Part shown: piece by piece, positions 3,703 through 62,981 of the stretch
Layout: each line of letters opens with the position of its first letter
Position numbering within the stretch: the stretch's first letter is position 1
Source of the DNA: Octopus sinensis
Lineage: Eukaryota
Assembly: GCF_006345805.1 (NCBI RefSeq)
Contig: NC_042999.1
Coordinates: forward strand, 113,584,001-113,648,000
Length of the DNA stretch: 64,000 nucleotides
Direction of reading: 5' to 3'
Translations under genes and position numbers: made by a program
Notes under the pieces: model-generated
The model's input: the letters and a program-made list of their open reading frames with translations, nothing else
Told to the model about the DNA's origin: nothing
Databases searched by the model: none

Positions 3703-4229
3703 GATATCTAATGATTTTGTGTGTGTCTGTGTTAATAAAAATATTTCTTATATTGTATGCTTATTGTTAGTTTTAAAACATGCTAATGCTCAATACGCCT
3801 TTGTATTGGAAATAATTGTGTGCATGGAATCCAGAATTGCAAAACTCAGACCTAAAAAACGGAGTGGGGGGATTCGTGCATCCAATCTCGTTTGGTAGAG
3901 AGAAAGAAATAATGGATAATAGGTAAAAGTTTTAAACGGTAACCTACATCGTAACCGGTTGAGATGGACCATGGCCATGGTGAAAAAATATTATGCATCG
4001 GGATGGTTTCCCTTCAATCTACCACGAAAGGAATTGAAGATGTGGTGCAAGGTTGAAGTGAACTGTGTTTTACTGTTAATGAGTGTAGGGTGGGACACTC
4101 GAATGATATGCAATGTTTACATAAGACAGAAGTTGCGGTTCCATTTCTGAGCGTTTGTACTTTCTCCAGGGTTGATGTGATATTTGTGTTTCTCCTTTCA
4201 TCTTTCTATATCCAAATAAATTTAAAGAG

Positions 4230-4790
4230 TGCTGAGTTGTTTTCAAAAGTTTCAGGATCTCGGGGCTGTATTCAAGAGCGAAGGGAAGCAGGAGGCTGAA
4301 ATGGATGCTAGAATCTCAGGTACTGGCACAGTAATACGCCAGTTCCAACATTCGATCCTCAGAAGAGGAGAGATTAGTAAGAAAGATGCCTATCCTATGG
4401 TCATGAATGTTGGGTATGATCGCGTATACAAGCGATAAAAACGGGGTTTTTTCGAAGGATCTCTGGAGAGAAGTTACTCGACATGGTGCCAAGCTCGGAG
4501 GTGAAGGATTCTCTCCAGGTCGAGCCACTACTTCTCTGCATTGAGAAGTTACAGCTCCAGTATTAAGGATATCATTAGAATGTCACAGGAAATAATCACA
4601 AGACAAATTCTTCAAGCCGAGTCAACCAGCAGAATACCTAGGGATAGACCAAGAACGAAATGATTGGATGATTTCCAATCAGTTGGTCATGTTTGGGACT
4701 CCAGCCAGAAAGTCTAATGACGGTTGGTTCTAATAGGAACCAATGGAGGAGATTCTACCAACACGACCTAGGAATAGGAGTTGAGAGTAG
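4230..4790 (+). mobile_element. RTE-clade LINE, degenerate 3' RT region
   Basis: Frame-broken translation DLGAVFKSEGKQEAEMDARIS...RRISGEKLLDMVPSSEVKDSLQVEPLLLCIEKLQLQY...RPRTK.LDDF...GSNRNQWRRF, typical of the RTE post-RT region. Confidence 0.8.
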
Positions 4791-12545: not shown

Positions 12546-12625
<80 letters not shown>

Positions 12626-12790
12626 CCTATCTATCTACCTATCTATCTACCTATCTACCTACCTACCTACCTATCTATCTATCTCTCTATCTATCTACCC
12701 ATCTATTTAACTACCTACCTAGTCATTTATTTAACTACCTACCTACCCATCTATTTAACTACTACCTACCTATCTATTTAACTACCTACA

Positions 12791-12839
<49 letters not shown>

Positions 12840-12940
12840 CTATCTATCTATCTACCTATCTATCTACTTGTCTAATTACCTACCTATATACATATCAATC
12901 TATTTATCTACCTAACTACTTACCTATCTATCTATCTGAT
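12546..12940. repeat. (CTAT)n/(CTAC)n tetranucleotide array
   Basis: Directly visible, with degenerate CTATTTAACTAC variants in the middle. Confidence 0.95.
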
Positions 12941-13304
12941 TTTGCTCCTATTCTTAGCATTTTGTCTTTGTTAGATTTCTGTTTGGTGAAATGAAATGTG
13001 CACACACAGACACATGCATACATATATCATATACATATATATACACACACATACATGCAAACAGACATGTATATACACATATTCATATACTTGTCGGTAC
13101 ATACATACGTACATCAAACACACATATGCATACATACAAATTTATGTATGCATTTATATATGTATGTACCAATGTAAGTACCCACATGTATATATATATA
13201 TATATAAAATGAGCAAGATATACCCAGCTCTTAACAGAAGAATGGAACGTAGATGTACTTGCATATATATATATATTATAATATAATATATATATGTACA
13301 TATA

Positions 13305-13525
13305 TTCTTTTCTTTTATTCTTTTGTTTCAGTCATTTGACTGTGGCCATGCTGGAACACCGCCTTTAGTCAAGCAAATCAACCCCAGAACTTATTCTTTG
13401 TCAGCCTAATACTTATTCTATCGGTCTCTTTTACCAAACCACTAAGTTACGGAGAGGGGGAAACACACCAACATCAGTTGTCAAGCAATAGGGGAGTGGG
13501 GTCAAACACAGGCACACAAATACAT
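13305..13525 (-). mobile_element. SINE family A, 3' half, CpG-decayed
   Basis: Reverse complement of the SINE-A tail; runs into the large microsatellite at the position of the SINE's internal (TA/TG)n. Confidence 0.8.
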
Positions 13526-13569
13526 ATAGATATATACATATAATATATATATATATATATTATTATATA

Positions 13570-13602
<33 letters not shown>

Positions 13603-13681
13603 GTATACATATATATATTATACATACATATACATATATATATTATATAATATATATAATATATATATGTATACATACATA

Positions 13682-13723
<42 letters not shown>

Positions 13724-13810
13724 ACATACATTACATATATATATATATATATACATATATATATAATATATACATATATATATATATATAGTATTACATA
13801 CATATACATA

Positions 13811-13845
<35 letters not shown>

Positions 13846-14139
13846 GTTATACACATATACATATTATATATATATATATATATATATTACATATGTATAT
13901 ATATATATACATATGTATACATACATATACATATATTATATATATACATATGTATATATATATACATATGTATAACATACATATACATAATATATATATA
14001 TTACATGTATATATATATATACATATGTATATATATATATGTATACATACATATACATATATATATAATATATACATATGTATATATATATATACATATG
14101 TATATATATATATGTATACATACATATACATATATATAT

Positions 14140-14198
<59 letters not shown>

Positions 14199-14220
14199 CA
14201 CATACACATATATATTTATG
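13525..14220. repeat. Long (TA)n/(TACA) compound microsatellite
   Basis: Directly visible; source of the spurious YI-repeat ORFs. Confidence 0.95.
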
Positions 14221-14459
14221 TTATATTTTGTTATTTTCTGTTACTTGTTTCAGTCATTTCACTGTGGTCACGCTGGTGCACCGCTTTACGTTATATATGT
14301 GTGTTTTTATGAATATTACTAGTTTTTTAATGTTTAACACACTTTTTACAACATTGTAAAATTTTTTTAAAAATACAATGTCAAAAAATGTGAAAACCAG
14401 ACTCTGCTGTAACTTTATTCAACTGATATATTATTCTATACACATTTACACAAATATGG

Positions 14460-14504
<45 letters not shown>

Positions 14505-14505
<1 letters not shown>

Positions 14506-14750
14506 GCGTGTGTTTCACTCATTTGACTGAGGCCATGCTGGAGCGATTTTCAGTATCGAACAAATTGACCCCAGGACTTATTTTTTAAGCTTGGTACTTA
14601 TTCTGTCGGTCTCTTTTGCTGAACCGCTGATTTATGGGGGTCCTAAATACATGAACATTGGGTGTCAAGCAGTGAGGCTGACATTGGTCAGCCCTAGGCT
14701 ATTGAAGAACTGAACACAGAATCATGTGGTTGGGAAGCAAGCTTTGTGTG
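14505..14750 (-). mobile_element. SINE family A, degenerate and internally deleted
   Basis: CATTTGACTGAGGCCATGCTGGAGC...TACTTATTCTGTCGGTCTCTTTTGCTGAACCGCT matches the SINE-A 3' half. Confidence 0.7.
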
Positions 14751-14759
14751 AGTGTATAT

Positions 14760-14807
<48 letters not shown>

Positions 14808-14902
14808 TATATGTATATATATATATATATACGTATATATGTATGTATATGTATACACACATATATATGTATGTATGTATGTATGTGTATATATATATAT
14901 AT

Positions 14903-14938
<36 letters not shown>

Positions 14939-15765
14939 TATATATATATATGCACATACATTAAATGTATATCTGCATGTGCGTGTGTGTGCACGTGCAT
15001 GTATGCGTGTGTCCCTAAAGCAATGGATATAGTCAAATTCAGTTGTTAATGGAAGAATGAAAGATGAAGTTAGCAGGATTTGAACTGAAAACATTTCAAA
15101 ACTAATTTAATTTCTGTAATTATGATACTCCTATTAAAAATTTAAAAAACTGATGACATCTAACATTGGCACAAACATCATATTTTCAGAGATTATAGTG
15201 TATGATATACACTTGGGTACTAGAATTGTACCTATTTTACTGATCCTGAAATGATGAAAGACAAAGGTTGCACATATATACATGCTGCATATAAGCACAC
15301 ACACACATGCACACAAAATTATGTATATGTATATACATATGTGATTATGTATATGTATGTATAAATATATATATGAATATATAAATACATATATATGTAT
15401 AAATATATATATAAAATTATGTATATCTATATCTATATGTGTGTGTGTATATTTATATTTATATATATATATAATTATGTATATATATGTATATATGTAT
15501 AACTACATAAATAAAAATAATTTCAATCCACATTAACATCTAATGTCCTCCATTTAGGAAAAATATGATTGAATTTGTTTAACTTTGCTTTATAAGTTAA
15601 ATCATATACTTAATATACTTATATAAATTTTCATATCTATGCTAATTTACACCAGTAAATTAAAGTAAAGTATGAAGAAACAATGTTAGAAATCTTTTGG
15701 AAACTCTCCAATTAAAAGATGCATTCACATTCAACCCTTTATATATATATATATATATATATAAT

Positions 15766-15796
<31 letters not shown>

Positions 15797-15949
15797 ATAA
15801 ATATATATATATATTATATATATTATACATACATACATACATATATATATATTAACTTATACATGTATACATAATTTTATATATATATTTGTATGTGTGT
15901 ATATATATATATAATATATACACACATACACACACTCATATATATATAG

Positions 15950-16145
15950 TTAATCCAAACAAGAAAGCACAAAAAAAAACACAACAACGCGAGGACGTGG
16001 AACAAATATGGTATTATTGGACGCTCAGGAAAGAAGGAGGGTTTAACGTTTCAAGCGGAGCTCTTCGTCGGAAACATAGGAGAAGGAAAGATCCAGAGAA
16101 GGGAGGACAGAGGAAAAAAAATCACCAACGGTATACACGAGGTCA
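15950..16145 (-). mobile_element. ~195-bp hammerhead-bearing short element (Penelope-terminal-repeat or retrozyme-like) embedded in (TA)n
   Basis: Contains a minimal hammerhead motif followed by TTCCTGAGCG..TAATAC, also present in the related element at 40495-40670. Confidence 0.6.
16041..16075 (-). ncRNA. Minimal type I hammerhead ribozyme motif (U4C variant)
   Basis: GTTT CCGACGA A GAGC TCC GCTT GAA ACGT T AAAC: stem I GTTT/AAAC, stem II GAGC/GCTT, palindromic stem III ACGT. Confidence 0.6.
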
Positions 16146-16218
16146 CATGTACATATAAATATACATAATTTTATATATATATTTATATATATAAATATAC
16201 ATAATCTTATATATATAC

Positions 16219-16255
<37 letters not shown>

Positions 16256-16292
16256 TATATACATATAAATATACGTAATTTTATATATATAT

Positions 16293-16358
<66 letters not shown>

Positions 16359-16505
16359 TTATATATACATATATATATGCATACATTTATATATACATAT
16401 AATTATATAATTATGTATATTTATATATATATAATTATGTACATTTACATGCATTATCCTGGCCTCTTCAAATGCTTTCACTCCACTCCACACTTTTGTT
16501 CACCA

Positions 16506-16666
16506 GGTGCAGGAGTGGCTGTGTTGTAAGTCACTTGCTTACCAACCATATGTTTCCAGGTTTAGTCCCACCGCGTGTCACCTTAGGCAAGTGTCTTCTA
16601 CTATAGCCTTGGGCCGATCAAAACTTTGTGAGTTGATTTGGTAGATGGAAACTGAAAGAAGCCCAA

Positions 16667-16702
<36 letters not shown>

Positions 16703-16935
16703 TGCGTGAGTGTGGGGGTTTGAGTGCCTCTGTTTGTCTCCCCAGCATTGCTTGACAACCGATGCTGGTGTGTTTATGCCCTCGTAACTTAGCAGTTCAG
16801 CAAAGGACCCAATAGAATAAGTACTAGGCTTACAATAAATAAGTCCTGAGGTCGATTTGCTCGACTAAAGGTGGTGCTCCAGCATGACTGCAGTCAAATG
16901 ACTAAAACAAATAAAAGAAAAGTAAAAGAATAAAA
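16506..16935 (+). mobile_element. SINE family A, full length, with internal microsatellite
   Basis: tRNA-like head, CORE-like CACCTTAGGCAAGTGTCTT, internal (TA)n, 3' GGTGCTCCAGCATGACTGCAGTCAAATGACT and (TAAAAGA)n tail. Confidence 0.8.
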
Positions 16936-17069
16936 GGATATATAATTATATAATTATGCATATTTATATATATATATATAATTATATATATTTATATATA
17001 TATGTGTGCGTGTGTATGTATGTATGTATGTATGTATGTATGTATGTATGTATGTATGTATGTATGTAT

Positions 17070-17818
17070 AGAACAACTCCAACACAGATGTCCTTGCTTC
17101 TGCAGGCATCACCTCAATTAAAGCTATGATTTTGAGGAACCAAATGAGATGGTGTGGCCATATTGTTCAAATGGCAGATGAACGCATGCTGAAGCAGCTG
17201 TTTTATGATGAGCTTGCAGACCGGGAAACACTATCAGTGTAAACCTAAAAAAAGTTTTAAGTTCAGCATAAGGACTACAATAAAGTCACTTGGAATGGAT
17301 CCAGAAGACATAAAATCCATTGCTTTGGATTCAGTTGGATGGTAAACAAAAGTGTGGAGTGGAGTGAAAGCATTTGAAGAGGCCAGGATAACACATGTAA
17401 AACTCAAAGGAGATCTAAGGAAGAATGTTATGATCAAGAAGGTGCATGACAATGACCTTTTTGTTTGCACAGTCTGTGACAGACCATGCCTTTCTTTTGT
17501 TGTGCTCAAATCTCATTTACAAACCCATGGAAAACGAACCTCCAATAACTATTCTGCCTATATTTCTGTGCACACCTTTGAATGCAGTGTATGCCAGTAG
17601 GTTTGCAAATCTAACAGAAACCTCAAAAGACATTTTAAGATTCACAAAGATCAGACCTTATCTGCAACTCTTGGTGATCCAAATCAGGTGTGTAATTTAT
17701 GTGGGTGTTTTTTCAGAACATTGTCTGGTTTAAAAAGCCTCATCAGATGCCATGATGGTGCTAAGGTGTAGGTACAGGAGGTAGTCAAACTCTGCATAAC
17801 GAGTAGACAGCCACTATA
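17070..17818 (+). mobile_element. RTE (BovB-like) LINE 3' fragment with three C-terminal C2H2 zinc fingers
   Basis: ILRNQMRWCGHIVQMADERMLKQLFYDELA, then CTVCDRPCLSFVVLKSHLQTH, CSVCQ*VCKSNRNLKRHFKIH and CNLCGCFFRTLSGLKSLIRCH. Confidence 0.8.
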
Positions 17819-18159
17819 TATATATATATATATATATATCAAAGAATAAAACATAAAAACATAAAAGAATAAAATAATATACTCTGAAAAATACTCTAAA
17901 AATAATAATATTATAAGGACAGTTGAAGTTAAGGGGAGATAATAATTAGAAATGGGGCTAATCGTAAAGCTAGCTATAAATGAAGTTTTAAAGTGTTGTA
18001 GATTTTGAGATTTATGTTACATAAATGTGGCCTGTCTATTTATTTAAAGGTAATATTGTTTAATAAATTCTTAGTTCTTAGTATATACGTATATAATACT
18101 ACTATAAATACTATTAAAACTTCTACTAACTATATTCATAAGTGTATGGAGATGATATG

Positions 18160-18916
18160 CTGGTTTTAAAAAAAAATTCATAATTTTTTCAATTTTATCA
18201 CACGTAAAGCTATTCCTATGTCAGCATTTTATTCCTCTCTCTTCATTACTGTTTAATAATAATTATCTCGACTGGCGTATTTTCATAAACTTTGTTGTAC
18301 ATAATAAGCACGTTTTGTTATTTTATATGAGTTCGCTGTACAAATAATAAACCAATTAAGGGTGTATTCTATTTTATTAGATACTAGCAGTATCGCCCGG
18401 CGTTGCTCGGGTTTGTAAGGGAAATAACTATATAAGAATTTTTAGAGATGTAAAGTATAATAGCCATCTCAATATGGTTAACCACAAAGGGGGGTGTTAC
18501 TGTAGCTTTTTACGTTCTGAGATTTAATAATACATTTTTAGAGAGTTACTTCCCTTATATAAACCGAGCGAAAATGCATTAAAAATGCGGAAAAATTGTT
18601 AATTTTTTTTTAAATCGTAGACTCATCGTAGACGCGCGCTAATACCCAGAAGGGCTCGATATGAATCACGACTATAAGATACCCGCTTTTGGTTACACTG
18701 CACCGCAAAATATGGGAGTAGTTAGGAATCTAAATCGTAGGAGACAGACACACAACTTCACTTTTATATATAAAGATTAACTCCTATATGTATTTACTTA
18801 GACTTGTAGAATATTTTAATTTGGAATTTTTGAAAGACTGATAATGCTGGGAAATTCTTTTTTAAATTTCGTTCGCTGTGGATTCACTATATTCCTTAAT
18901 ATTAATATTGTTATTA

Positions 18917-18967
<51 letters not shown>

Positions 18968-19370
18968 GAGGTTACTATACATCTATAAATTACGTTTTCT
19001 AGATTGCAATTATTATTTAACCTATATTTGGATATGTCTTTACATGTGCATTTATTTAAAACACGGTTATGTTTATTATTTGTGATAGTTCTCATATGGT
19101 TAATATTAGTTTAATTCGTTTAATTTGAAATTGTTTATTGAGGATATAATATTACTTACATTCCTTGTAGAATATTTTCAATTATTTTATTTGATATAAT
19201 TTTCTCTGCATATACCATACCATGAGGTTATTCTGAAATACGAATTTCTTATCCGTTGGTAAATATCCCAAATTAGTATATATTTTTTACATTTCTTTAA
19301 AAAATATACTTTTTACATTTCATTAGAAAAGTGTAAATTAGTAAACTTCCTGATAACTGGGTACACTTGT
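18160..19370 (-). mobile_element. Penelope-like element, degenerate GIY-YIG region, interrupted by (AAT)n and a HINE
   Basis: NKCTCKDISKYRLNNNCNLENVIYRCIVTS...KEYSESTANEI*KRISQHYQSFKNSKLKYSTSLSKYI, resuming after the HINE as NKIEYTLNWFII. Confidence 0.7.
18378..18777 (+). mobile_element. Non-autonomous Helitron/Helentron-like element (HINE/DINE-1 type)
   Basis: 5' ACTAGCAGTATCGCCCGGCGTTGCTCGGG and 3' GACAGACACAC...CTTTTATATATAAAGAT termini, shared with the element at 32073-33260. Confidence 0.65.
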
Positions 19371-19395
19371 TATTCCCTAATGTATTATATATATA

Positions 19396-19513
<118 letters not shown>

Positions 19514-19576
19514 TATGCATATATACATATATACAGCGATACACATATATATATACATATATCGATATATATATAT

Positions 19577-19654
<78 letters not shown>

Positions 19655-19657
<3 letters not shown>

Positions 19658-20188
19658 AATAAATGAAAGAATGGAGTTGAACGACGAATTAACAAAATTC
19701 CTTTATTTTCGACATATGTTTCGAAGGCTGCATATTCCTAATTTCGAAGGAATAAGGGGTGCATTAAGCCGCCTTCTCATCAGGAAAAACAAGGAACTTA
19801 TGTCAGCATCAAGATGCACAAAAACTTTTAGATGACTGCCCACACGGAGCCCATAGCGATAATGAGTGTTTCTTTAAAATATTCCGTTATAAGCAGTGAC
19901 GTCAAAAATGGTTGAATGTAGAAGATTCTAGAAGGTTCAAGGGTTCAAACAAGGTTGGAGGAGAGAGATCTAAGAATAGGAAGGTGATAGGGTGCAGGTC
20001 ATATGAATGGTGATTTTGTTGTTTTCTTTTGTGAATGAGTGCCTATGTGTGTGTATGTATATAACTACATTAATGTCTATGTGTGTGTATGTGTGTGCGT
20101 GATTGTGTGTGTGGTTGGATAGATGCCAAAAACAGACAGTGGTGAAGTGACAGGTTTGTGTCTGTGTGTTTGATTGTGCTTACGATAG

Positions 20189-20233
<45 letters not shown>

Positions 20234-20773
20234 GAGGGCGAGGTATAGAGACAAAGGTAAAACATACCTCAATGGATTGGGTAGTAGTCCTTTAAGAGTA
20301 TAAAAATTGACAATGGAGGTGATATATAAATGGGACTATATTATTAAAATTCAAGGAGGTTATCTATATTAATCATTATTCATATGAGTGAAGGGTGTGT
20401 TTTTGCCAGTGCATGCACCTATAGGATTTCTCGACCATTGTATTTATTTGGCGAACAATATATGGAAAAGTTCGGAATTACAGACGCCACAAAATTTTCT
20501 GCCCTTATCAAACGGAAAGGATACCGACAATATGGACCATTCCAGCTTGAAAGTTGTATTGCTGTCCTTAAGACGCCAAACTAATTTACTTAGTCCTGTG
20601 CTGTGTTGTTTTCTCTTATCTCGGAAAGTTGAATAATGATTGGAGATCCTGTGGGCTAATTTAGAAGTAGTTGCCCCAATGTAGAAGAAGACATCGGTAC
20701 CGGAAGAAATTTTGCACTGGTAAATGGAATTTCTATTTTTGGAATTGCTGGATAAGAACTTTAATCTCAACTA

Positions 20774-20775
<2 letters not shown>
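19655..20775 (-). mobile_element. Penelope-like element 3' part (GIY-YIG endonuclease and terminal region)
   Basis: ORF 20444-20770: SIYQCKISSGTDVFFYIGATTSKLAHRISNHYSTF...LEWSIL...CGVCNSE; downstream hammerhead motif. Confidence 0.85.
19706..19788 (-). ncRNA. Type I hammerhead ribozyme, intact core, extended stem II
   Basis: TTTTC CTGATGA GAAGGC...GCCTTC GAA ACATATGT C GAAAA; predicted cleavage after GUC, between 19711 and 19710. Confidence 0.8.
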
Positions 20776-20831
<56 letters not shown>

Positions 20832-20883
20832 CACCATACATATATGTACATATACACACATACATATATGTACATATATATAT

Positions 20884-21127
20884 CAGGTCATCCCATAAAT
20901 TCTGTCCGATTTTACTTTTTTTAAATTGAATGAAATTTAATAGTATTTTAGGATGTCTAATGGAATTAAAAATTATTTTTATGCATTTGTGTACATTTAA
21001 ACTAATTAAATATTATTTCACACAATACTAGAATTAAAATTTCTTTATTAAAACTCTTTCTAGTATGGAAGTATCCAAAGGGCGTTTCAGGCACATAATG
21101 CTTTATGAGTACAAAAAAGGAAACATG
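20884..21127 (+). mobile_element. Mariner transposon 5' fragment
   Basis: TIR-like CAGGTCATCCCATAAATTCTGTCCG and transposase start [20 protein letters not shown], which runs into a microsatellite. Confidence 0.7.
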
Positions 21128-21465
21128 CATATATATATACGTATATATACATATATACGTATATATATATACATACATATATATACATACACATACATAC
21201 ATACATACATACATATGTATCTATACATACAAATATATATATATATATATCCATACATATACATATACATATACATACATGTATATATAAATACATATAT
21301 TTATATACATATATATATGCATAGATATATATATACATATATATATGCATACATACATATACATATACATACATGCATATATAAATACATATATATATAT
21401 ACATATATATATGCATATATATATATACATATATATATGCATACATATATATATATACATTCATA

Positions 21466-21496
<31 letters not shown>

Positions 21497-21715
21497 GTAT
21501 ATATATACATATATATTTATTCATAGATATACATAGATATATGCATACATATAGATATACATAGATATATACATACATATATACATAAATATATGCATAC
21601 ATATATACATACATATATATATATACAAATATATATATACAAATATATATATACAAATATATATATATACGAATATATATATATATACATACATACATAT
21701 ATATACAAACATATG
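21127..21715. repeat. (TA)/(TACA) compound microsatellite
   Basis: Directly visible. Confidence 0.95.
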
Positions 21716-22722
21716 AGAAAGATGTAGAGTTCAAGGCAAATCAAGGATTATTCGTGAGATTTAAGGAGCGAAGAAGTTATCAATCCATTAAGAAGCAAGG
21801 TGAAAGTGCAACAGCTGACGAACAAGCAGCAACGGAATTTCCTAATGCATTAAAGTAAATCATCGAAGAAAATGGGTTTCTTCCCGAACAGATTTTTAGC
21901 GTAGACGTAACTGGATTGTACTGGAAAAAATTGCAGACCGTTCATTCATTTCTAAGGAGAAAACTGTTCCAGGCTACAAGGTTTCAAAAGAACCTGTGAC
22001 CATTATGCTAGGAGGTAATTGTGCAGGAGATTTTAAGTATCATGCACACAACCCCGTGCCCTGAAGAACATACCCAAGACATCTCTCCCTGTTATATGAA
22101 TGACTAATTCGACGTTTTTCCAAGACTATGGGTCTTGTCACGAAGCTTTTGCTCCTTATAATGTAATCCTCGAGGAAAAGAAGACAGTTCAAGAAACTCT
22201 CAACCGTTTTTTAAGCGCACCGAACAACAAGAACAGCCAGAGTCAGCTGTTAATGTTGACGATCCACAGCCATCTACATCTGCGATGTAAACCACCAAAT
22301 TGTATGTACGTATTGGTAAATTTAAAATAATTTAGTTTTTTTCTTTTTACAATAATTACTGAATTTGCTTTTTAAGCTTAAAAAATGCTTTTATTTTAAC
22401 AGGTCTTATTGCAAACCGCATTCATAAATAAAGCGTCCGCGATGTACGTAAACACTGCCAAATTGTATTCATAAATTTAGATTACTTTTTTTTTTTTACT
22501 GTACTATATTAAAAAATTAAAATTATCTGTGAGCTTAAAATAGGGTTTTTATTAACCATGTATTTTTGAAAATGCATTCATAAATAAAGTTCAGAACTGG
22601 GAATGGTTATTATCTGTTTAGCCTAGAGACAAGTAAATTCGGCCTAGCCTAGCCTAGAGACAAGTTAATTCGACTTAAGTCGTGTCTCCTAGTACCAATT
22701 AACGACGTAAGGTGACGTATAT
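21715..22722 (+). mobile_element. pogo/Tigger transposon remnant, internally deleted
   Basis: [16 protein letters not shown]...[15 protein letters not shown]...EQIFSVDVTGLYWKK...VTIMLGGNCAGDFK...NPRALKNIPKTSLPV; Tigger-like right end near 22700. Confidence 0.75.
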
Positions 22723-22998
22723 AGTTATGTATGTGTATATATATATATATAATATGAGGGAATATTATTCCAAACTTACAGGGGAAAATTCAATTTAGAA
22801 ATACTAAATCAAATTTCACAAAATATTATATATATATAAATTAGAAAAAAAAACACCTTTTATCAATTCAAAAGGAAAAATTAAACTACACCATCTAGAA
22901 AATTACATATAATAGAAAGATTAAATATAAGATAAAAAAATATAACGATGATTAAGTAATGTGCAAAATAATAAATAAAACGTATATATTTGGTAGAA

Positions 22999-23105
22999 TA
23001 ACGACGCGTGTTTCGTGGCTCTATTTAAGAAATGATTATAATAAAAATATTAGTAGTAGTAGTAGTAAAATCACTTCAATATAAATATAGCCACTCATCA
23101 GGTTA
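22999..23105 (-). ncRNA. Type I hammerhead ribozyme in an AT-rich Penelope-like terminal fragment (~22770-23540)
   Basis: TAAC CTGATGA GTGGCT...AGCCAC GAA ACACGCGT C GTTA; loop II contains a (TAC)n run. Confidence 0.7.
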
Positions 23106-23177
23106 AATATAACTACAATAATAAAATAATTAATTAATAAATATACGTAAATAATCTTTTAAAAAATAAATATATTC

Positions 23178-23245
<68 letters not shown>

Positions 23246-23575
23246 CGATACAAAATATACCTTAAATGAAAACTAAATACAACACTTTAAACTATATACA
23301 TTAAATCAAATTATTAAGTAATATATTTATTTAATAAGCATCCAAATAAAGTATAATACCCATTAAGCAATTAATACTAAAACCTTAATATTAATTAATA
23401 CACACAATGCTAGTACAAGCCATAAATACTGGAATACATGTAGGGATAAGACTACATATAAATTTAATAATAATTGTAATTTAGATAATGTAGTCTATAA
23501 GTGTATGGTAAATATAATAGATGATAAGATATTGAATTATCATAATTAAATACTATTTATATAGGGTCCACTTCG

Positions 23576-23577
<2 letters not shown>

Positions 23578-23649
<72 letters not shown>

Positions 23650-23680
23650 GTATATATGTATATATATATATGTATATATG

Positions 23681-23754
<74 letters not shown>

Positions 23755-23848
23755 TATGTATATAGTATATATATATATGTATATATGTTATATATATATG
23801 TATATATATATATATATGTATATATGTATATATATATGTATATATGTA

Positions 23849-23879
<31 letters not shown>

Positions 23880-23918
23880 ATATATATATGTATATATGTA
23901 TATATATGTATATATGTA

Positions 23919-23974
<56 letters not shown>

Positions 23975-24115
23975 TATATACATATATACATATATATACA
24001 CATATATATACATATATATATACATGCACATATATATATATATTATATATTCATATATGTACATACATACATATATTCATATATATACATACATAAATAC
24101 ATATATACATACATC
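23578..24115. repeat. Long (TA)n(TG) compound microsatellite
   Basis: Directly visible. Confidence 0.95.
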
Positions 24116-24117
24116 TC

Positions 24118-24526
24118 TTTTTACTCTTTTACTCTTTTACTTGTTTCAGTTATTTGACTGCGGCCATGCTGGAGCACCGCCTTTAGTCGAGCAAATCGAC
24201 CCCGGGACTTATTCTTTGTAAGCCCAGTACTTATTCTATCGGTCTTTTTTGCCGAACCGCTAAGTGACGGGGACGTAAACACACCAGCATCGGTTGTCAA
24301 GCAATGCTAGGGGGACAAACACAGATGCACAAACATACACACACATACATACATATATATATATACGACAGGCTTCTTTCAGTTTCCGTCTACCAAATCC
24401 ACTTACAAGGCATTGGTCGACCCGAGGCTATAGCAGAAGACACTTGCCCAAGATGCCACGCAGTGGGACTGAATCCGGAACCATGTGGTTGGTAAGCAAG
24501 CTACTTACCACACAGCCACTCCTGCG

Positions 24527-24527
<1 letters not shown>
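24118..24527 (-). mobile_element. SINE family A, full length, CpG-intact
   Basis: Reverse complement of the 16506-16935 element, including the internal (TA/TG)n and the TAAAAGAG tail. Confidence 0.85.
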
Positions 24528-24572
<45 letters not shown>

Positions 24573-25990: not shown

Positions 25991-26730
25991 TCTGTTTTCT
26001 CATTAAACTCAATGTCATATCTGTTCACTAAGCAGTGATTATACAAACAAATCCAAAACCAATAGTTGGGAGTACGATGACTAACTAAATAAGACTTTGC
26101 AACGGAGCAAGTGGCTGGTTAAAATAATCTTTAAATTTCTTATAAGCAGGAGAACAACGTTCATACTTAGATACATACATACAAGCTACATACATCCATA
26201 TTTACCAATATATAAGCATTTAGACATGAAGACATACGTGAGTTCTCAGTTAAGTTCGTAACTGAGTTTCGCTTCCAGATTGTACATATTTCTCTTTAGT
26301 TAAATGATTAATCTTAAATTATTTGAGAAGAGAATGAACATTACAGCATGCCAATCTTTCTTCGTGATAACTCTGATCTCGTAGTAATATTTTGCCTTTA
26401 TGACAGTTGATTACTTACCTAGCATTCGGGGTAGACACTCTGTTATGATTCCCACATGAATCCATTTATTTCACTTCTAACGCCATTACTTTTGGGAAAG
26501 ACATGAAAGTCGCACACACCTGTTTTACACTACACTAAACTCAGGCTTCGTATTTACCGTATCCGGAAAGTTTGCCGCGAACATTTTTGACACAGGAAAA
26601 TTCGACTCAAGATTTTTGGCCGCAGGAAAGTTCGCCGCATAGGAAATTTTGCCGCAAGGAAGTTCGCCGCATAGGGAATTTTGCCGCAAGACAATTTAAC
26701 CGAAAAAAAGATGAATTGCTCCTTTGGTAT

Positions 26731-26982
26731 TGTATTATGAACGGTGAAAAGAGTACAACAGAAAAAGGAAGGAATGGAATGTAATTGGGTCTTACCTAGT
26801 CGGAGATAACTTGGATCGCCTTTAGCCAACTCGCTCGTGTCGTGTCTTCGTCGTGTCTCAGTCAACTGCTCGATGCCGCACGTGCGTTCTGCCTGTCGCT
26901 TCCGCTTCCGCCGGCGCATGCGCCCTGCAAGCCCCACTTCCGCTCTCCCCCATCCGTCACACTCCTTCACCATCACACCACA
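26731..26982 (-). repeat. 3' LTR (252 bp)
   Basis: Direct repeat of 30133-30385. Confidence 0.95.
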
Positions 26983-27018
26983 CGCCCCCCTGATCTATAG
27001 ATCACTGAACCGGCTTCC

Positions 27019-27568
27019 TCACTCGCTCCCGCACCTGAAACTGGTTTCATAATCAGCCAACCAGGGAGGAGGGTGCTGCTCCCTCTGTGGTCGCAGTGCG
27101 ACCCTAGGACTTGTTTCTGGTGTGTTGCTGCCGACCTCGTCATCCTGTCTGTTGTTTTCGTCTTGCCCACTGCTGCTTGTCCCATCCTCTGGGGCATGGA
27201 CAATCCTCCGTATGTCCAAAACGTGGCGTGGCATACCATCGACCGAGATGTTATTCTTTGAATTTACGGAGGTTATTGTCCCCTTTCCCCATTGCGATGT
27301 ACACCGTGCGTTTGGGGGTTTTACCCAGACTTCCTCTCCGACCTGCACGAAGGCGTGCTCTTCCTCTGCCCCGGGTCGCATTGATGTAGTACACAGATGC
27401 CTCCACTCGTACCTGAATATTGCCCTGTGTGGCACCGACTCCTCAGCCTGTCCTGATCTGGGCGACATATTGTACCAAAACACGGCCTCGACTGGTGAAA
27501 TGTGACCCCTCTCTGCCATGGCCTTGATGGTACGATGATGCCTTTCCACCACCCCGTTTCCACTTGTT
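27019..27568 (-). pseudogene. Integrase C-terminal part only (core E motif onward)
   Basis: SGNGVVERHHRTIK...EVWVKPPNARCTSQWGKG fused directly to the RNase H end VIFVPSEKNK. Confidence 0.85.
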
Positions 27569-27747
27569 CTTCTCGGAAGGCACAAAGATCACGCTCAGCT
27601 TCAGATTGAACTCAGTGGTTAGTTCACGCAGTATTCCTAATCGACGCTTTACCAGCATCTCTGCAGCCCCTTTGGTCCGCACCCTCCGCTCATCGGTGAT
27701 GACTGCTGTCGCCCAACCAAGTACAGTGGCCGAATCAGTCCTGATTT

Positions 27748-29379
27748 CTATGGTGTGCAACCCCACTTCAAGGCTAGGTTCACCCCCTTCAGCACGGCAT
27801 CCAACTCCGCCACGTTGATATGATTGCAGTCATCCATCTTCCTGAGCCAGGCCGCATCTTCCACCGTGACACCTCCCACTTCCAAGACGACCCCTATTGC
27901 GATGCTACTGGCGTCACACCATACGATCCCGCTTTTTGATTTGGGAACATACCAGCTGCCCCTCACTGGATCCTCTGCTCCTACTCTGACCAAGACTTCC
28001 TTCATCATGTCGATTGTCCTCTCCCCGACTTTATCATTCCACTTCACTCCTTCGGCTCGTCTCTTGATGAAGCTACATGCTGTCCGGAGCCAGCCTGCAA
28101 TCGGGTAGTGTCCCACCAGCTTCCCACACACAGAGAACAGTTCCCGTCTACTCATGCTGGCGCCCAGTTCAGGGACCTCATTCCCTCGCCGGAACACCAA
28201 GGCGTCGGCCTTGTCTCTCCATAGCTTGAGGCCCAGTGCAGCACCTCCCTCCATAGCCTCTGGCGGCTTGGCGATCAGTCCAAAACTCTTCAGGTGGCCT
28301 ATGACCTCCGTTGCTGGTATCACGGTTTCATCCACCAGAATGTCGTCGATGTATGAATTGGTGGCCCTTTTTACTCTGTCCACCTTCCCCAGGATGGCCT
28401 TGAGAATTGTTGCCATAATCTTCGGCGCTGAATTCAGCCCGAATCCCAACCTGGTCAGACAGTACGTCCGGCCCCTATACCTGACGAGCTGGTACTTCCA
28501 TAGTTTCTCAGCCACATGCACCTGAAGGTATGCCGACTTTAAATCGACAATCGTGGAGGCCCCCGTCGTCTGCCTCCACTCTCGCAAGGCGTCTCCGCAG
28601 ACATCCGTGGCCTCGCCGCCTGTATGACACGACACGTGGTCATTCAGCTCTCGGAAGTCGAGCACTGGCCTGACCTTACGCTTTGTGGGCTGTATCACCG
28701 CCATCAGTGGCAGGACTCCGCTCTCTTCTTTTTCCCAGGGGATCAGTATGCCCTCCTTAAACCACCGCTCCACCTCCCCCTCGAACTCACTTCTGGCATC
28801 TCCTTTTAGAGTATACTGATAGCAGCCCACTTTATTCTTTAACATCGAGGGTTCTCCCTTCCAGTGCCACTCCACTGTCCACCTCTCGCCATCAAAGACA
28901 GCCCGAAAATCCTGGTCTTCAATGGTGTGCGCCGCATCCTTTTCCTCACGGTTGTCGTCGGTGCGCGGTCTCGCCCTACACGGTTTCCCCGCTAACCCAA
29001 ACGTTACGCCAGCCTCGTTGACGGTGACACCTCCCAAACGGGTGATTGCATCCATCCCCATCACCACGTCGATCTCGTCCACCAAGTGACCAACCACAAT
29101 TGCTCGCAACGTCAGCTGTAGTCCCTGCACCACAATCTGCGCATCCGTAACCCCTTCGCAGTGAACTTCTCTTCCGTCAACTGCCCTAACACTGCTTCCT
29201 CCACTCCACGTCTCTGCCACTTCTGTGGTCATCAGGGTCGTCGTACAGCCCGTGTCCACCAGGGCTCGCGACATCTTCCCCTTCACCAGAATGTCGACCA
29301 CAGGTAGCGATGATAAACGCGCCGCTACTAATCCAAAGGGACAACTACCGGCGCAGTAGTCTCCCGCGGTCCGTTTCCC
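27748..29379 (-). pseudogene. pol: Pol: protease, RT and RNase H; frameshift near 27762
   Basis: LVDTGC (protease), RPVLDFRELN, IVDLKSAYLQV, YIDD (RT), WCDAS, AELDAV (RNase H); KWGCTP* is out of frame with GLHTIEIRTDS because a G-run is one base short. Confidence 0.92.
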
Positions 29380-30059
29380 CACAGACACTCGCTGGCTACA
29401 TGCCCTGGCTCTCGACACCGGTAGCAAATCACCTCAGGCTTGGGCGACGCGCAGTCATGGAAACACTGTCCTTTGAACGATCGCACGCGTTCTCTCCTCA
29501 GCCCCTCTCCGCTGCTCCTAGCTGGGCCACTTTTCGACGTTACAGTCGCTGCTACCGACGTCAACCTGCTGCACGAAACCAGTACACGTGCCCGCGATAT
29601 GATATCGGCCATCGGCATCGAACGCACGTTCGGGAGCTTCTGTAGCTCGACCGACATGATGTCAGGAAAGCCGGTCACGAACGCTAACCTAACCGTCCGT
29701 TCTAGCGACTCTCCCTCATATCCCGCCAGTTTAGCCAACCTTTTAAGCTCACTGGCGAACACGTCCACCTGTTGCCCAGTCCATCTCATTCTACCCAGCC
29801 GAGCGTACGCTTCAAACATTCCTTCCGCGAAGGCCTCCATAAGTCGGATTTCCACTTTATCTGCGCTGAGTTGGTCCGTCTCCTCCATCTCTAAATATAA
29901 CGCCAACGCCGGGCCATCCAAATACAACGGCATGAAACTCGCCAGGTCAGCTATACCGTGGAGCTTCGCCACCAACTTCACCCTCTTCAACCAAGCGACC
30001 ACATCGGTGTCGCCGCAAAACGGTGTTATAGGCTCGCGTGAAACCAGAGCACTCTGCAT
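29328..30059 (-). CDS. gag: Gag (243 aa) with one intact CCHC knuckle and a truncated first knuckle
   Basis: Open ORF: ITPFCGDTDVVAWLKRVKLVAKL...CFHDCASPKPEVICYRCREPGHVASEC. Confidence 0.9.
   Translation of the reverse strand: MQSALVSREPITPFCGDTDVVAWLKRVKLVAKLHGIADLASFMPLYLDGPALALYLEMEETDQLSADKVEIRLMEAFAEGMFEAYARLGRMRWTGQQVDVFASELKRLAKLAGYEGESLERTVRLAFVTGFPDIMSVELQKLPNVRSMPMADIISRARVLVSCSRLTSVAATVTSKSGPARSSGEGLRRERVRSFKGQCFHDCASPKPEVICYRCREPGHVASECLWGNGPRETTAPVVVPLD
29338..29379 (-). promoter_or_regulatory. -1 programmed ribosomal frameshift signal
   Basis: Slippery G GGA AAC (29379-29373), 7-nt spacer, hairpin GGGAGACTACT-GCGCC-GGTAGTTGTCCC; switches gag WGNG to pol GKRTAG. Confidence 0.75.
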
Positions 30060-30120
30060 AATTTTTCTATTTTTATTTTTACGAAACCGAGTGATTATTT
30101 GCCGGTCCCAGTGATTATTT

Positions 30121-30132
30121 GCCGAAATAGCT
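30121..30132 (-). promoter_or_regulatory. Putative primer-binding site complementary to tRNA-Phe nt 1-12
   Basis: AGCTATTTCGGC abuts the 5' LTR; the plus strand reads GCCGAAATAGCT, the 5' end of conserved metazoan tRNA-Phe(GAA). Confidence 0.65.
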
Positions 30133-30385
30133 TGTAGTATGAACGGTGAAAAGAGTACAACAGAAAAAGGAAGGAATGGAATGTAATTGGGTCTTACCTA
30201 GTCGGAGATGAACTTGGATCGCCTTTAGCCAACTCGCTCGTGTCGTGTCTTCGTCGTGTCTCAGTCAACTGCTCGATGCCGCACGTGCGTTCTACCTGTC
30301 GCTTCCGCTTCCGCCGGCGCATGCGCCCTGCAAGCCCCACTTCCGCTCTCCCCCATCCGTCACACTCCTTCACCATCACACCACA
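30133..30385 (-). repeat. 5' LTR (253 bp)
   Basis: TGTGGTGTGATG...CATACTACA; three differences from the 3' LTR seen by eye (2 substitutions, 1 indel). Confidence 0.95.
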
Positions 30386-30712
30386 GGTATATAATTGTTT
30401 CAACCGACCTATCAATTATACTATTATAGCAAAGCTACAAGGGGTGGGGACGGGCAAAATAAAGCAATCTAAAAGATGATAATGTTTTCAAAAAAAGTTT
30501 GCTTAAAAATACAATATAAATATAACATTTACAAAGAACAAGAAGAAAACAAAAAAACAGTTAAATCTAAAAAGGAATTATAAAACACACACATGCATAT
30601 ATATATATATATATAATCAAAATTCAGTTGAATTAGGTAGGTACTTAAGTTGCGGCACTAAGTCAGTCCGGTGTGGTCCGCACAGCTCGAATTTAGGTGA
30701 ATAAAAAGCAAA

Positions 30713-32072: not shown

Positions 32073-33260
32073 ATATAAAACTAGCATTAAAGATCCGTCG
32101 TTGCCGGGTCATAGTGCTAGTGCATGTATATATGTGTATATATATGTGTACATATTACATGTACATCTATATATATATACATCTACACATAAAATACAAA
32201 ATACAAAGTTATATCTTGATATCGCTAGTGATAACAATACTCAAAATATACAACAGACTATAATTGTTAGCCCGTCTCTTGTAATTTCGATCAATTGTAT
32301 CTTGTCCTCCCACTTGTATAGGAGTGTGGCTACAATCCAGCCTACCTCTACTTCTGGGGGAGGGGGCATTTTTGATTTTTTTTCCGACACATCCTACGTC
32401 CCAGATATAAAGGTAAAAATAAAATATTTCCACTTTGCAAGGTTCGAGTCGAGTACTCCCTTGCACGCTCCGTTGACTCGAACCTTGCTTCTATTGTGGC
32501 GAATTTACCGCCTCTGATTAGATACCTTTCATAGTCGCACCAAGACACTTTTCAAAGGTGACTTCCTCCATGTGTTCAAATCTTCTTTTTTCTCTACATT
32601 GTATACTTTATAGACAATAGTCTTTTCTTTAATTTGATTTTCTATTATCCATCTGGACTATTCCATTTCTGCACGCTAATTTTATTTTTAATTTATTCCC
32701 ATTCATGTGAAACCCCTTATTCAAGTTCAAATCATTGATGCAATTTTATACCAATTGCTATTTTTACTTTTGTTATGTTACGATTATATTATACTTTAGT
32801 TTGATTTTAATTATTACTTACTACATATAATTCAATTGTTATTATTACTTTTATTGTTAAAGTGAAAGTATCTGACATAAAATAGAGAAATGTTTTTGTT
32901 TCACTTTTAACACCCAATACTGAAATAGTGGAGAAGATATGATATTGCTATGGGCTCGCTCTAGGCAAGAAGTTGAACATTTTTTTGCCCATGAAACTAC
33001 ATGGACCCTAAGTAAGGCATGTGTAAAATTTGAATGGAATTGGTTGAGTAGTTCTCAAATTTTAGGGAATCGTAGTGGAGAAGATATGATATTGGTGTGG
33101 GCTCGCCCTAGGCAAAAAGCTCAAACTTTTTTTGTCGATGACACTCCCTGGACCCTAAGTAAGGCATGTGTAAAATTTGAATGAAATTGGTTGTGTAGTT
33201 CTCAAGTTTTAGGGAAACACACAGACAGACAGACATTATCAGTTTTATATATATAAAGAT
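32073..33260 (+). mobile_element. Non-autonomous Helitron/Helentron-like element with internal ~145-bp tandem duplication
   Basis: 5' ACTAGCATTAAAGATCCGTCGTTGCCGGG; two copies of TAGTGGAGAAGATATGATATT...TTTTAGGGA (32927-33215); 3' (CAGA)n...TTTTATATATATAAAGAT. Confidence 0.65.
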
Positions 33261-39640: not shown

Positions 39641-40494
39641 TGGCTAATAAACAAGTAATCATTTGCATGCCAAGCAAAACGCTTAGCAGCATTTCGTCTG
39701 CCTTTACATTCTGATTTCAAATGCTGTGAAGGTCGACTTTGCCTTTTATCTTGTTGGGATTGGTAAAATAAGTACCAGTCGAGCCCTGGGATTGATGTAA
39801 TTGACAAGCCCACACCCTCCAAGATTTCAGGCTTTGTGCCTGTAGTAGAAAGGATTATAATTCAACCAAGGTCAACTTTGCCTTCCACCCTTTCAGGTTT
39901 GATGAAATAAAGTGTCAGTAAGCTACTCCAGTCGATGTAATCAACTAGCTCCTGCCCTTAAAATTGCTCATATGAATTCAGCATTGTAGAAAAAGTTGAT
40001 GAAGGCAAAATTTTGATAAATATAAACAGTTCAAAAGTCTAATAAATTGGTTTGCTATAATGATGAGGAAAAGTCCAATGTTTCAGTCAGTATCCTATGT
40101 AGGGGAACGAGGCTTTCTGGTGGTACTGATTATGAACAAATTAGGATTAGGGAAAGAGAGAAAATTGCATGTGGAATGTATTATACAAAATAAAATAAAG
40201 GATGTTATATGGTGACACATGTTGGACAGTAGAGAAGAGATAACCAGCAATAACAATTGCAATTTTGAAAGACACAAAAGAAGAGAAACAAAAGAAGAGA
40301 AACAAAAGAAGAGAAACAAAAGCAGAGAAAGAGAAAGCAACAAAAAGATGATTATCACTATGGATTCCAGAAAATTCAAAAGTAAATTGACAAATTTAGA
40401 AGAAAAAAAAGGAAGAGAAAAGGGAGGCTAGAAGAAGAAAAAGAACATATTCCTATATATGTATATATATATATATATATGAAGGGAAAGTTTA

Positions 40495-43239: not shown

Positions 43240-43580
43240 TATCATCGTCATTTAACGTCTGCTTTCTATGCTGTCATGGGTTGGGTGGTTTGAATGAGGA
43301 CTGACAAGCCAGAAGGCTGTAATAGGCTCCAGTCTGATCTGGCAAGGTTTCTACAGCCCTTCCTAATGCCAACCACTTCGAGAGTGTAGTGGGTGGTTTT
43401 TACATGCCACCAGCATAAGGGCCAGTCAAGCGGTACTGGCATCGACCACACTTGAATGGCGCTTTTTACATGCCACCAGCACGAGAGTCAGTCAGGCAGC
43501 ACTGGCAACAACCATGCTAGAATGGTACTTTTTATGTGCCACCGGCACAGGAGCCAGTCAGGCAGCACTGGCAAGTGAAA
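43240..43580 (-). mobile_element. RTE LINE 3'UTR fragment with ~60-bp subrepeats and (GAT)n tail
   Basis: CATCATTTAACGTC...CCCTTCCTAATGCCAACCAC...TGCCACCAGCA repeats; same family at 44056, 48435, 61385 and 61910. Confidence 0.75.
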
Positions 43581-43844: not shown

Positions 43845-44483
43845 GTTCCAATCAATTTTGTTTGTAGTCATGCTGGGATACTGCTTTGAAGGGTTTTAGT
43901 TAAACAAATCTACCCAGGACCTATTTTTTAAAGCCTGGTACTTATTCTGTTGGTCTTTTTTGCCAAACCACTAAGTTAGAGGGATATAAACATCCCAATA
44001 CTGCTTGATGAGCAATGGCGAGGGACAAACACAGACACAAAGACTTGTACACACACATCATCATCATCATCATCATTTAACGTCCGTTTTCCTTGCTAGC
44101 ATGAGTTGGACAGTTCGACCGAGGACTGGGAAGTCAGGAAGCTGCACCAAGCACCAATCTGATCTGGCAGTGTTTCTACAGCTGGATGCCCTTCCTAACA
44201 CCAACCACTCCATGAGTGTAGTGGGTGCTTTTATGTGCTACCAGCACAGGGGCCAGAGGAGGCTGGCAACGGCCACAATCGGTTGGTGCTTTTTATGTGC
44301 CATATATATATATATATATACAATAGGCTTCTTTCAGTTTCCATCTACTGAATCCTCTCACAAAGCTTTGGTTGGCCCAAAGCTATAACAGGAAACACTT
44401 GCCCAAGGTGCTACACGGTGAGACTGAGCCTGGGACCATGTGTTTGAGAAGCAAGCTTCTTACCAAACAGCCATGCCTGCACC
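43845..44483 (-). mobile_element. SINE family A split by an RTE 3'UTR insertion (44056-44302) at its internal microsatellite
   Basis: SINE 3' half at 43845-44050 and 5' half at 44323-44483 flank the inserted element. Confidence 0.75.
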
Positions 44484-44675
44484 TATTTTTGATCTGTCTT
44501 TTAAAAAAATGCTTCATTTTTACTTGATGTAAAGACCATTTTATGTGCATTTGATTTTTCATTTTTATATTTTACTCTATGTCTTGGGTTCTTGTAAGCA
44601 GTAATAGAAATTTTCACTGCCATCATCAAAATTATTGTTATTATTATCATTATCAACATCATTATCATTGTTATT

Positions 44676-44827: not shown

Positions 44828-45040
44828 GGTGGTGAGCTGGCAGAATCATTAGCATGCCAGGCAAAATGCTTAACAGTATTTTGCCCATCATTACGTTCTG
44901 AGTTCCAATTCCACCAAGGTCAACTTTGCCTTGCAACCTTTCGGGTTTCAATAAAATAAGTACCAGTGGAGCACTAAAGATGATGTAACTGACTAGTCCT
45001 TTCCCACCAAATTTCAGGCCTTGTGCCTTTAGTAGAAAGG

Positions 45041-45837: not shown

Positions 45838-45876
<39 letters not shown>

Positions 45877-45889
45877 ATATATATATATA

Positions 45890-45920
<31 letters not shown>

Positions 45921-45990
45921 ATATATATGTGTGTGTGTGTATGTATATATATGTATGTATGTATGTATATATATGTATGTATGTATATAT

Positions 45991-46024
<34 letters not shown>

Positions 46025-46041
46025 GTATGTATATATTATAT

Positions 46042-46127
<86 letters not shown>

Positions 46128-46216
46128 TATATGTATGTATGTATATATTATATATATGTATGTATTATATATATATATGTATGTATATATATATATATAT
46201 ATATGTATGTATATAT

Positions 46217-46297
<81 letters not shown>

Positions 46298-46310
46298 ATA
46301 TATATATATG

Positions 46311-46350
<40 letters not shown>

Positions 46351-62754: not shown

Positions 62755-62782
62755 CATGTACATATATGTGTGCATGTGTATG

Positions 62783-62813
<31 letters not shown>

Positions 62814-62850
62814 TATATATATATATACATATACATATATACATATACAC

Positions 62851-62897
<47 letters not shown>

Positions 62898-62950
62898 CAT
62901 TATATATATATATATACATATATATAATATATACATATATACATATACAC

Positions 62951-62981
<31 letters not shown>

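Follow-up and report, generated by a model that had tools for sequence, protein, structure and literature searches.

LTR retroelements depend on a primer for minus-strand synthesis, and in the canonical retroviral and LTR-retrotransposon arrangement the primer-binding site (PBS) lies at or within a few nucleotides of U5, begins with TGG and complements the 3' CCA end of a host tRNA over about 18 nt. With few exceptions, the tRNA 3' end initiates reverse transcription (PMC7472051). One exception is the half-tRNA priming of copia, Ty5 and 1731, in which the PBS pairs with the anticodon stem-loop region of initiator tRNA-Met and a 5'-derived fragment of about 39 nt, made by a cut inside the tRNA, serves as primer. 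Another is the self-priming of Tf1 and Tf2 of Schizosaccharomyces pombe (Tf1/sushi group), in which a short PBS directly after U5, without TGG, pairs with the extreme 5' end of the element's own transcript, and RNase H releases an 11-nt primer by cutting the RNA:RNA duplex in cis between nt 11 and 12 (PMC7175516). According to PMC7175516, Goodwin & Poulter 2001 proposes "novel mechanisms of priming" for Tcn2-5. With respect to overall gene order, Odin LTR retrotransposons carry gag and PR-RT-tether-RNase H-IN, with an acquired cellular-type RNase H and no env (PMC9040795); they were reported only from sea anemones, and that paper does not mention a PBS or tRNA.

Here we describe an LTR retrotransposon whose putative PBS matches the first 12 nt of a host tRNA and not its 3' end. 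As with the canonical PBS, the site lies directly after U5, appears to depend on a host tRNA, and matches different tRNAs in related elements; it is, however, 12 nt instead of about 18 nt, has no TGG, corresponds to the opposite end of the tRNA and would need tRNA cleavage. Compared to copia-type elements, the complementarity is to nt 1-12 of tRNA-Phe or tRNA-Lys-type tRNAs and the cut would lie in the D stem. Compared to Tf1, the site is similarly short (12 versus 11 nt) and matches the extreme 5' end of an RNA, but the partner has the sequence of a host tRNA, and the pol has a retrovirus-type RNase H plus DUF7047, no chromodomain and a weak RVT_1 match. Full-text literature searches, including searches with the 12-mers themselves, returned no description of a PBS complementary to a tRNA 5' end, although an earlier report in the older literature cannot be excluded.

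Structure of the element and its 12-nt site

The window, meaning the whole 64-kb (64,000-nt) stretch of Octopus sinensis DNA that was analysed (contig NC_042999.1, positions 113,584,001 to 113,648,000), holds on its minus strand a single 3.65-kb element, and neither another copy nor a solo LTR was found within it. The following features were identified:

30386..30390, minus strand: target-site duplication (TSD) ATACC, upstream copy, read on the minus strand.
30133..30385, minus strand: 5' LTR, 253 nt, TGTGG...CATACTACA.
30121..30132, minus strand: 12-nt putative PBS AGCTATTTCGGC, the exact complement of tRNA-Phe(GAA) nt 1-12.
30085..30124, minus strand: copy-specific 20-nt tandem duplication in the leader (CGGCAAATAATCACTGGGAC / CGGCAAATAATCACTCGGTT), overlapping the last 4 nt of the PBS.
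29328..30059, minus strand: gag ORF, 243 aa, with one CCHC zinc knuckle (Pfam zf-CCHC, E = 1.3e-5).
27748..29427, minus strand: pol ORF, 559 aa, with aspartic protease, reverse transcriptase (YIDDILV; a weak RVT_1 match), DUF7047 (PF23088, which sits where a retroviral connection/tether would) and the start of RNase H, ending in a premature stop.
27563..27775, minus strand: remainder of RNase H in another frame (frameshifted), by tblastn with residues 517-587 of P0008, a full-length 931-aa relative.
27049..27570, minus strand: C-terminal remnant of integrase, by tblastn with P0008 residues 769-929.
26983..26995, minus strand: polypurine tract GATCAGGGGGGCG, directly 5' of the 3' LTR; the same ATCA(G/T/A)GGGG motif occurs in relatives.
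26731..26982, minus strand: 3' LTR, 252 nt.
26726..26730, minus strand: TSD ATACC, downstream copy.

The two LTRs differ at 3 positions and have TG...CA ends, and the identical pentamer abutting both outer ends fixes the LTR boundaries to the base. Against P0008 the copy aligns over residues 7-587, with a frameshift and a stop in RNase H, and then jumps to residues 769-929. About 180 aa of integrase (P0008 residues 588-768, the zinc finger and most of the catalytic core) are therefore deleted. The copy is young, as its LTRs are nearly identical, but it is defective and not autonomous.

The 12 nt that follow the 5' LTR with no spacer (30132..30121) are the only such site in the window on either strand, even with 1 mismatch allowed. 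The reverse complement, GCCGAAATAGCT, equals nt 1-12 of tRNA-Phe(GAA) as printed for human, both as a qRT-PCR forward primer (GCCGAAATAGCTCAGTTGGGAGA, PMC2175372) and as a 5' fragment (PMC12025293), and for Drosophila as a 5' probe (GCTCTCCCAACTGAGCTATTTCGGC, PMC7038984). No canonical TGG-type PBS adjoins the LTR, and the only TGG in the 61-nt leader lies inside the copy-specific duplication. The comparison rests on metazoan tRNA-Phe from these sources, since ARAGORN and Rfam searches of the window found no tRNA gene and no Rfam match, and ARAGORN on 77 related loci found no tRNA-Phe. The observation made in the preliminary description, that this LTR is followed immediately by a 12/12 complement of the tRNA-Phe 5' end in place of a TGG-starting PBS, is correct.

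Conservation of the 12-nt site among related elements

To assess whether the match was a property of one copy or of a family, we searched for relatives of the pol protein. The search returned 675 relatives at E below 1e-10, among them proteins of the cephalopod Argonauta hians and the mantis shrimp Oratosquilla oratoria, and 78 loci (numbered here with the prefix L) were retrieved from NCBI genomes, ENA and JGI metagenomes. The contig of L045 looked rearranged and was left out. In nearly every locus that reaches far enough upstream of gag, about 45 relatives with 29-63% pol identity, the sequence AGCTA-NNNN-GGC follows a typical LTR end (...ACA), whereas the U5 sequence before it and the leader after it share nothing between elements. 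In 13 elements (the window copy, L001, L002, L025, L069, L070, L072-L074 and L190-L193) both LTRs are present and the 12-mer starts at the first base after the LTR; where readable, these have 5-bp TSDs.

Across 38 elements, information content was high only at -3..-1 (the ACA LTR terminus) and at +1..+12, and fell to background from +13 onward. Positions +1..+3 were AGC in 38 of 38 relatives, bar one C at +1. Position +8 was fully variable and +6, +7 and +9 were partly variable. Most sites were located by a motif search, which inflates the apparent conservation, but the 13 LTR-bounded cases and the strand asymmetry do not depend on that search: the pattern AGCTANNNNGGC occurred 47 times on the sense strand and 2 times on the antisense strand of 366,635 nt of loci, where about 4.5 are expected per strand.

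Other copies and relatives keep the site, which passes the refutation test set in the preliminary description, under which a different, canonical 3'-tRNA PBS in other full-length copies would have refuted the reading. Four independent Oratosquilla insertions all carry AGCTATCTAGGC, and two Argonauta insertions both carry AGCTATTTCGGC. In many members (e.g., L004, L008, L011 and L042) the gag ATG follows the 12-mer by 0-10 nt, so there is no other non-coding sequence in which a PBS could lie.

Read as its complement, the site is GCC-NNNN-UAGCU. The nearly fixed bases correspond to tRNA nt 1-3 and 8-12 (U8, A9, G10, C11 and U12), and the variable bases correspond to the inner acceptor stem, nt 4-7, which is where tRNA species differ. 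The complements found were the following:

GCCGAAATAGCT, exact match to tRNA-Phe, in the window, L002-L004, L009, L015, L018, L023, L025, L053 and L191.
GCCCGGATAGCT, exact match to tRNA-Lys3 (UUU), in L027 and L034.
GCCCGGCTAGCT, exact match to tRNA-Lys(CUU), in L043.
GCCTCGGTAGCG, one base from tRNA-Met(e) GCCTCGTTAGCG, with a D stem that starts GCG, in L041.
GCCGCGATAGCT and GCCGTGATAGCT, no eukaryotic tRNA identified, the commonest variants in metagenomes.
GCCGGGATAGCT, no eukaryotic tRNA identified, in L013 and L070.
GCCTAGATAGCT, no eukaryotic tRNA identified, in the Oratosquilla copies, L001 and L074.

An IMG/VR scan for GCCG[CT]GATAGCTCAG returned prokaryotic or phage tRNA-Thr, tRNA-Phe and tRNA-Leu, which shows that GCCGCGATAGCT and GCCGTGATAGCT start real tRNAs but says nothing about the hosts. 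On an RT tree the variants were interspersed, with GCGA and GTGA types as sisters and GAAA next to GCGA; the putative primer has therefore been switched repeatedly. Complementarity stops at nt 12, as the conserved U5 end ...ACA cannot pair with tRNA nt 13-15 (C, A, G), and only Argonauta, whose LTR ends ...AAG, reaches 13 nt.

Inferred priming from the tRNA 5' end and its alternatives

The explanation we favor, with moderate confidence, is that the window holds a recently inserted but defective copy of a retrovirus-like element whose lineage uses a 12-nt PBS, placed directly after U5, complementary to the 5'-terminal 12 nt of a host tRNA (acceptor-stem strand nt 1-7, U8, A9 and the first three D-stem bases), which for this copy is tRNA-Phe(GAA). 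In this view, the gag zinc-knuckle chaperone would anneal tRNA nt 1-12 to the PBS, and the duplex would end at the U5 boundary because U5 cannot pair with tRNA nt 13-15. The tRNA would then be cut between U12 and C13, most likely by the element's own RNase H acting on an RNA:RNA duplex by analogy with Tf1, and the freed 3'-OH of U12 would prime minus-strand strong-stop DNA. Plus-strand strong-stop DNA would later copy the 12-nt primer to its natural 5' end, which would account for conservation stopping exactly at PBS position 12. What the sequences themselves establish is the anatomy of the element, the exact complementarity, its conservation across the family with sharp boundaries, the absence of self-complementarity and the intact RNase H catalytic residues of relatives (the D, E, D and D columns are invariant or nearly so in 20 full-length relatives); the annealing, the cut, the agent of the cut and the priming itself are inferences, with no biochemical evidence for any step. 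Several points also weigh against this explanation: annealing requires opening both the acceptor stem and the D stem, no natural tRNA-cleaving activity for priming is known in the D stem, and the searches above identified no matching eukaryotic tRNA for the commonest metagenomic variants or the Oratosquilla variant.

The interpretation offered in the preliminary description was partly supported. The data support its statements that this is an LTR retrotransposon, that the sequence after the LTR is a genuine PBS, here conserved in the family, and that the site is complementary to the 5'-terminal 12 nt of a tRNA and not to a 3' end; its proposal that a fragment of about 12 nt is the primer, possibly made by a Tf1-like cut, remains an inference. 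Its suggestion that a duplicated segment and a GGGACC in the leader hint at bipartite pairing was not supported. The GGGACC is present, but a 6-mer complement to tRNA-Phe appears in 39% of shuffled leaders (P about 0.39), and a search of U5, the leader and the start of gag in nine tRNA-Phe-type elements found no shared second complementarity. The duplicated 15-mer, CGGCAAATAATCACT, does occur twice (30124-30110 and 30104-30090), but it is part of the 20-nt tandem duplication private to this copy, which is absent from relatives, whose leaders are unrelated or missing. No other stretch of 7 nt or more complementary to tRNA-Phe exists in the window's LTR or leader, and the copia/Ty5 arrangement was thus not found.

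Of the alternatives, the one that survives best, although we consider it unlikely, is that the primer is a 5' tRNA fragment already made by a host nuclease before annealing, with no part played by the element's RNase H. The complementarity data fit this reading equally well, and 5' tRNA fragments are abundant in animal cells. However, known 5' fragments are 14 nt or longer (16-35 nt in PMC7515703), and their extra 3' bases (C13, A14, G15...) cannot pair with the conserved U5 end and would leave an unpaired 3' end that cannot prime unless trimmed. More doubtful still is that the 12-mer pairs with another conserved trans-acting RNA whose 3' or 5' end merely looks like a tRNA 5' end, such as a tRNA-derived SINE transcript, or that it has a non-priming role such as packaging, dimerization through the palindromic AGCT, or translation control. 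The absence of identified eukaryotic tRNAs for several variants and the AGCT palindrome may favor this, but three variants equal the 5' ends of tRNA-Phe, tRNA-Lys3 and tRNA-Lys(CUU) exactly, the variable positions are those that vary between acceptor stems, and the site sits exactly where a PBS must be, so the many members with no other non-coding sequence between the LTR and gag would be left with no PBS at all.

Self-priming of the Tf1 type is very improbable and is refuted at the sequence level. The short PBS without TGG resembles Tf1 and sushi elements (PMC7175516), but no copy of GCCGAAATAGCT exists as a separate complementary site in the window even with 1 mismatch allowed, none of 32 elements contains the complement of its own PBS with up to 2 mismatches, and the PBS is conserved across elements whose LTRs are unrelated in sequence. 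Coincidence, conceivable for one 12/12 match chosen after the fact, is refuted by the family-wide conservation, the strand asymmetry and the exact boundaries.

A broader reading, which we regard as about as likely as not, is that a whole, widely distributed retrovirus-like lineage, with hosts including molluscs, crustaceans and unidentified organisms in marine, estuarine, soil and peat metagenomes, starts reverse transcription from the first 12 nt of host tRNAs (Phe, Lys and others), with the element's RNase H cutting the primer out of the tRNA in trans. This would be a further mode of LTR-element priming besides the tRNA 3' end, the tRNA-iMet half and self-priming, and would link Tf1's RNA-duplex cut to tRNA use. 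Primer choice is one of the few steps in which LTR retroelements depend on a specific host RNA, and each host would be expected to carry a tRNA that begins with the complement of its resident PBS, i.e., GCCGAAAUAGCU (Phe) for the host of the window and Argonauta hians GCA_054771915.1 and GCCUAGAUAGCU for Oratosquilla oratoria GCA_046742065.1. These elements would also be natural targets of 5' instead of 3' tRNA fragments, and abundant 5' fragments might silence them, as 3' fragments do for mammalian ERVs. PBS detection in LTR-annotation software would need to change, because a search against tRNA 3' ends misses this whole lineage.

Lineage and flanking sequences

Full-length relatives encode PR and RT (the latter only a weak RVT_1 match), DUF7047, an RNase H of the PF00075/PF13456 type and not the Ty3/gypsy type, an H2C2 zinc finger and an rve integrase. 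The closest solved proteins by sequence were retroviral integrases and HIV-2 RT. An AlphaFold2 model of the window pol (pLDDT 78.6) best matched foamy-virus and HIV-1 PR-RT, with no Ty3 RT in the top 50. DUF7047 lies between RT and the RNase H, and there is no room for env in an element of about 4.2-4.5 kb. The overall order, gag, then PR, RT, a connection-like domain, RNase H and IN, with no env, resembles that described for Odin retrotransposons (PMC9040795). By domain order and predicted fold alone, the pol looks Odin/retrovirus-like and closer to retroviruses than to Ty3, so the trait also bears on how priming evolved near the root of retroviruses.

Other families were ruled out on their defining features. 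Troyka has 3-bp TSDs and CG...CG termini (PMC12440569), whereas the window copy and 12 relatives have 5-bp TSDs and TG...CA termini. For BEL/Pao, none of the Pao-type families (Pfam Peptidase_A17 and the associated DUFs) was hit by the window pol or by three full-length relatives. The Tf1/sushi group was rejected on the absence of self-complementarity described above. Chronos/Archon, considered as possible new LTR superfamilies, are plant and oomycete Ty3/gypsy lineages.

Targeting of tRNA genes was also considered. The single tRNA gene that ARAGORN detected among the 77 related loci was a tRNA-Val(CAC) next to one Oratosquilla copy. One of five Oratosquilla or Argonauta flanks examined later had a tRNA gene nearby, so this is not a general feature.

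Flanks and termini of related elements

In one Oratosquilla oratoria copy (related locus L069, CM102924.1), a tRNA-Val(CAC) gene at 8095-8167 lies 195 bp from the 5’ LTR. However, three other Oratosquilla copies and two Argonauta copies have no tRNA gene within 10 kb, so targeting of tRNA genes is not a general feature. In a further related locus, the ENA contig L073, a C1q-domain gene at 7802-8218 lies next to the element, which suggests a metazoan host for this contig, possibly a mollusc.

The polypurine tract is conserved across the family as (G)ATCA(G/T/A)GGGG, although the LTRs that follow it are unrelated in sequence. This was observed at 26983-26995 of the window and just 5’ of each 3’ LTR in the related loci L001, L002, L025, L069, L070, L072-L074 and L190-L193. 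The LTR termini were non-canonical in some elements. The LTRs of Argonauta hians (L002 4969-4975, and L191) end ...CAAG, as confirmed by the target-site duplications TCAGT and AGTAC in two copies, and this ending extends the tRNA-Phe complementarity to 13 nt. The LTR of L074 (4082-4086) ends ...ATA.

Departures from the primer-binding site pattern

Young copies keep the GCC...UAGCU pattern, which is the primer-binding site read as its complement, whereas older copies (LTR identity 93-95%) carry single-base departures from it. These departures, at L072 9330-9341, L042 75-86 and L073 9808-9819, read AGCTATCCCAGC, AGCTATCCGGAC and AGCTATTCCGGC, and the first two look like CpG decay. In the related locus L024, the 3’ repeat at 4002-4559 includes the LTR plus the primer-binding site again (86% identity), which indicates either two elements in tandem or an assembly artefact.

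Other repeats in the window

Besides the LTR element, the window contains a 249-aa ORF that matches the endonuclease domain of non-LTR retrotransposons (PF14529, E = 1.5e-6) and is a fragment of a different retroelement. Much of the window is filled by very long (AT)n and (TCTA)n microsatellite arrays of hundreds of copies each. There are also a 147-nt unit in two copies, a 66-nt tandem repeat at two distant places, and two dispersed repeat pairs (74-81% identity), all of which are probably other interspersed repeats. The positions are as follows.

7470-8219 (+), ORF matching the non-LTR retrotransposon endonuclease domain
12546-24111, 45866-46323 and 62779-63145, (AT)n and (TCTA)n microsatellite arrays
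32926-33216, 43397-43574 and 62142-62419, the 147-nt unit and the 66-nt tandem repeat
24349-24531 versus 44304-44486, and 39859-39948 versus 44907-44996, the two dispersed repeat pairs
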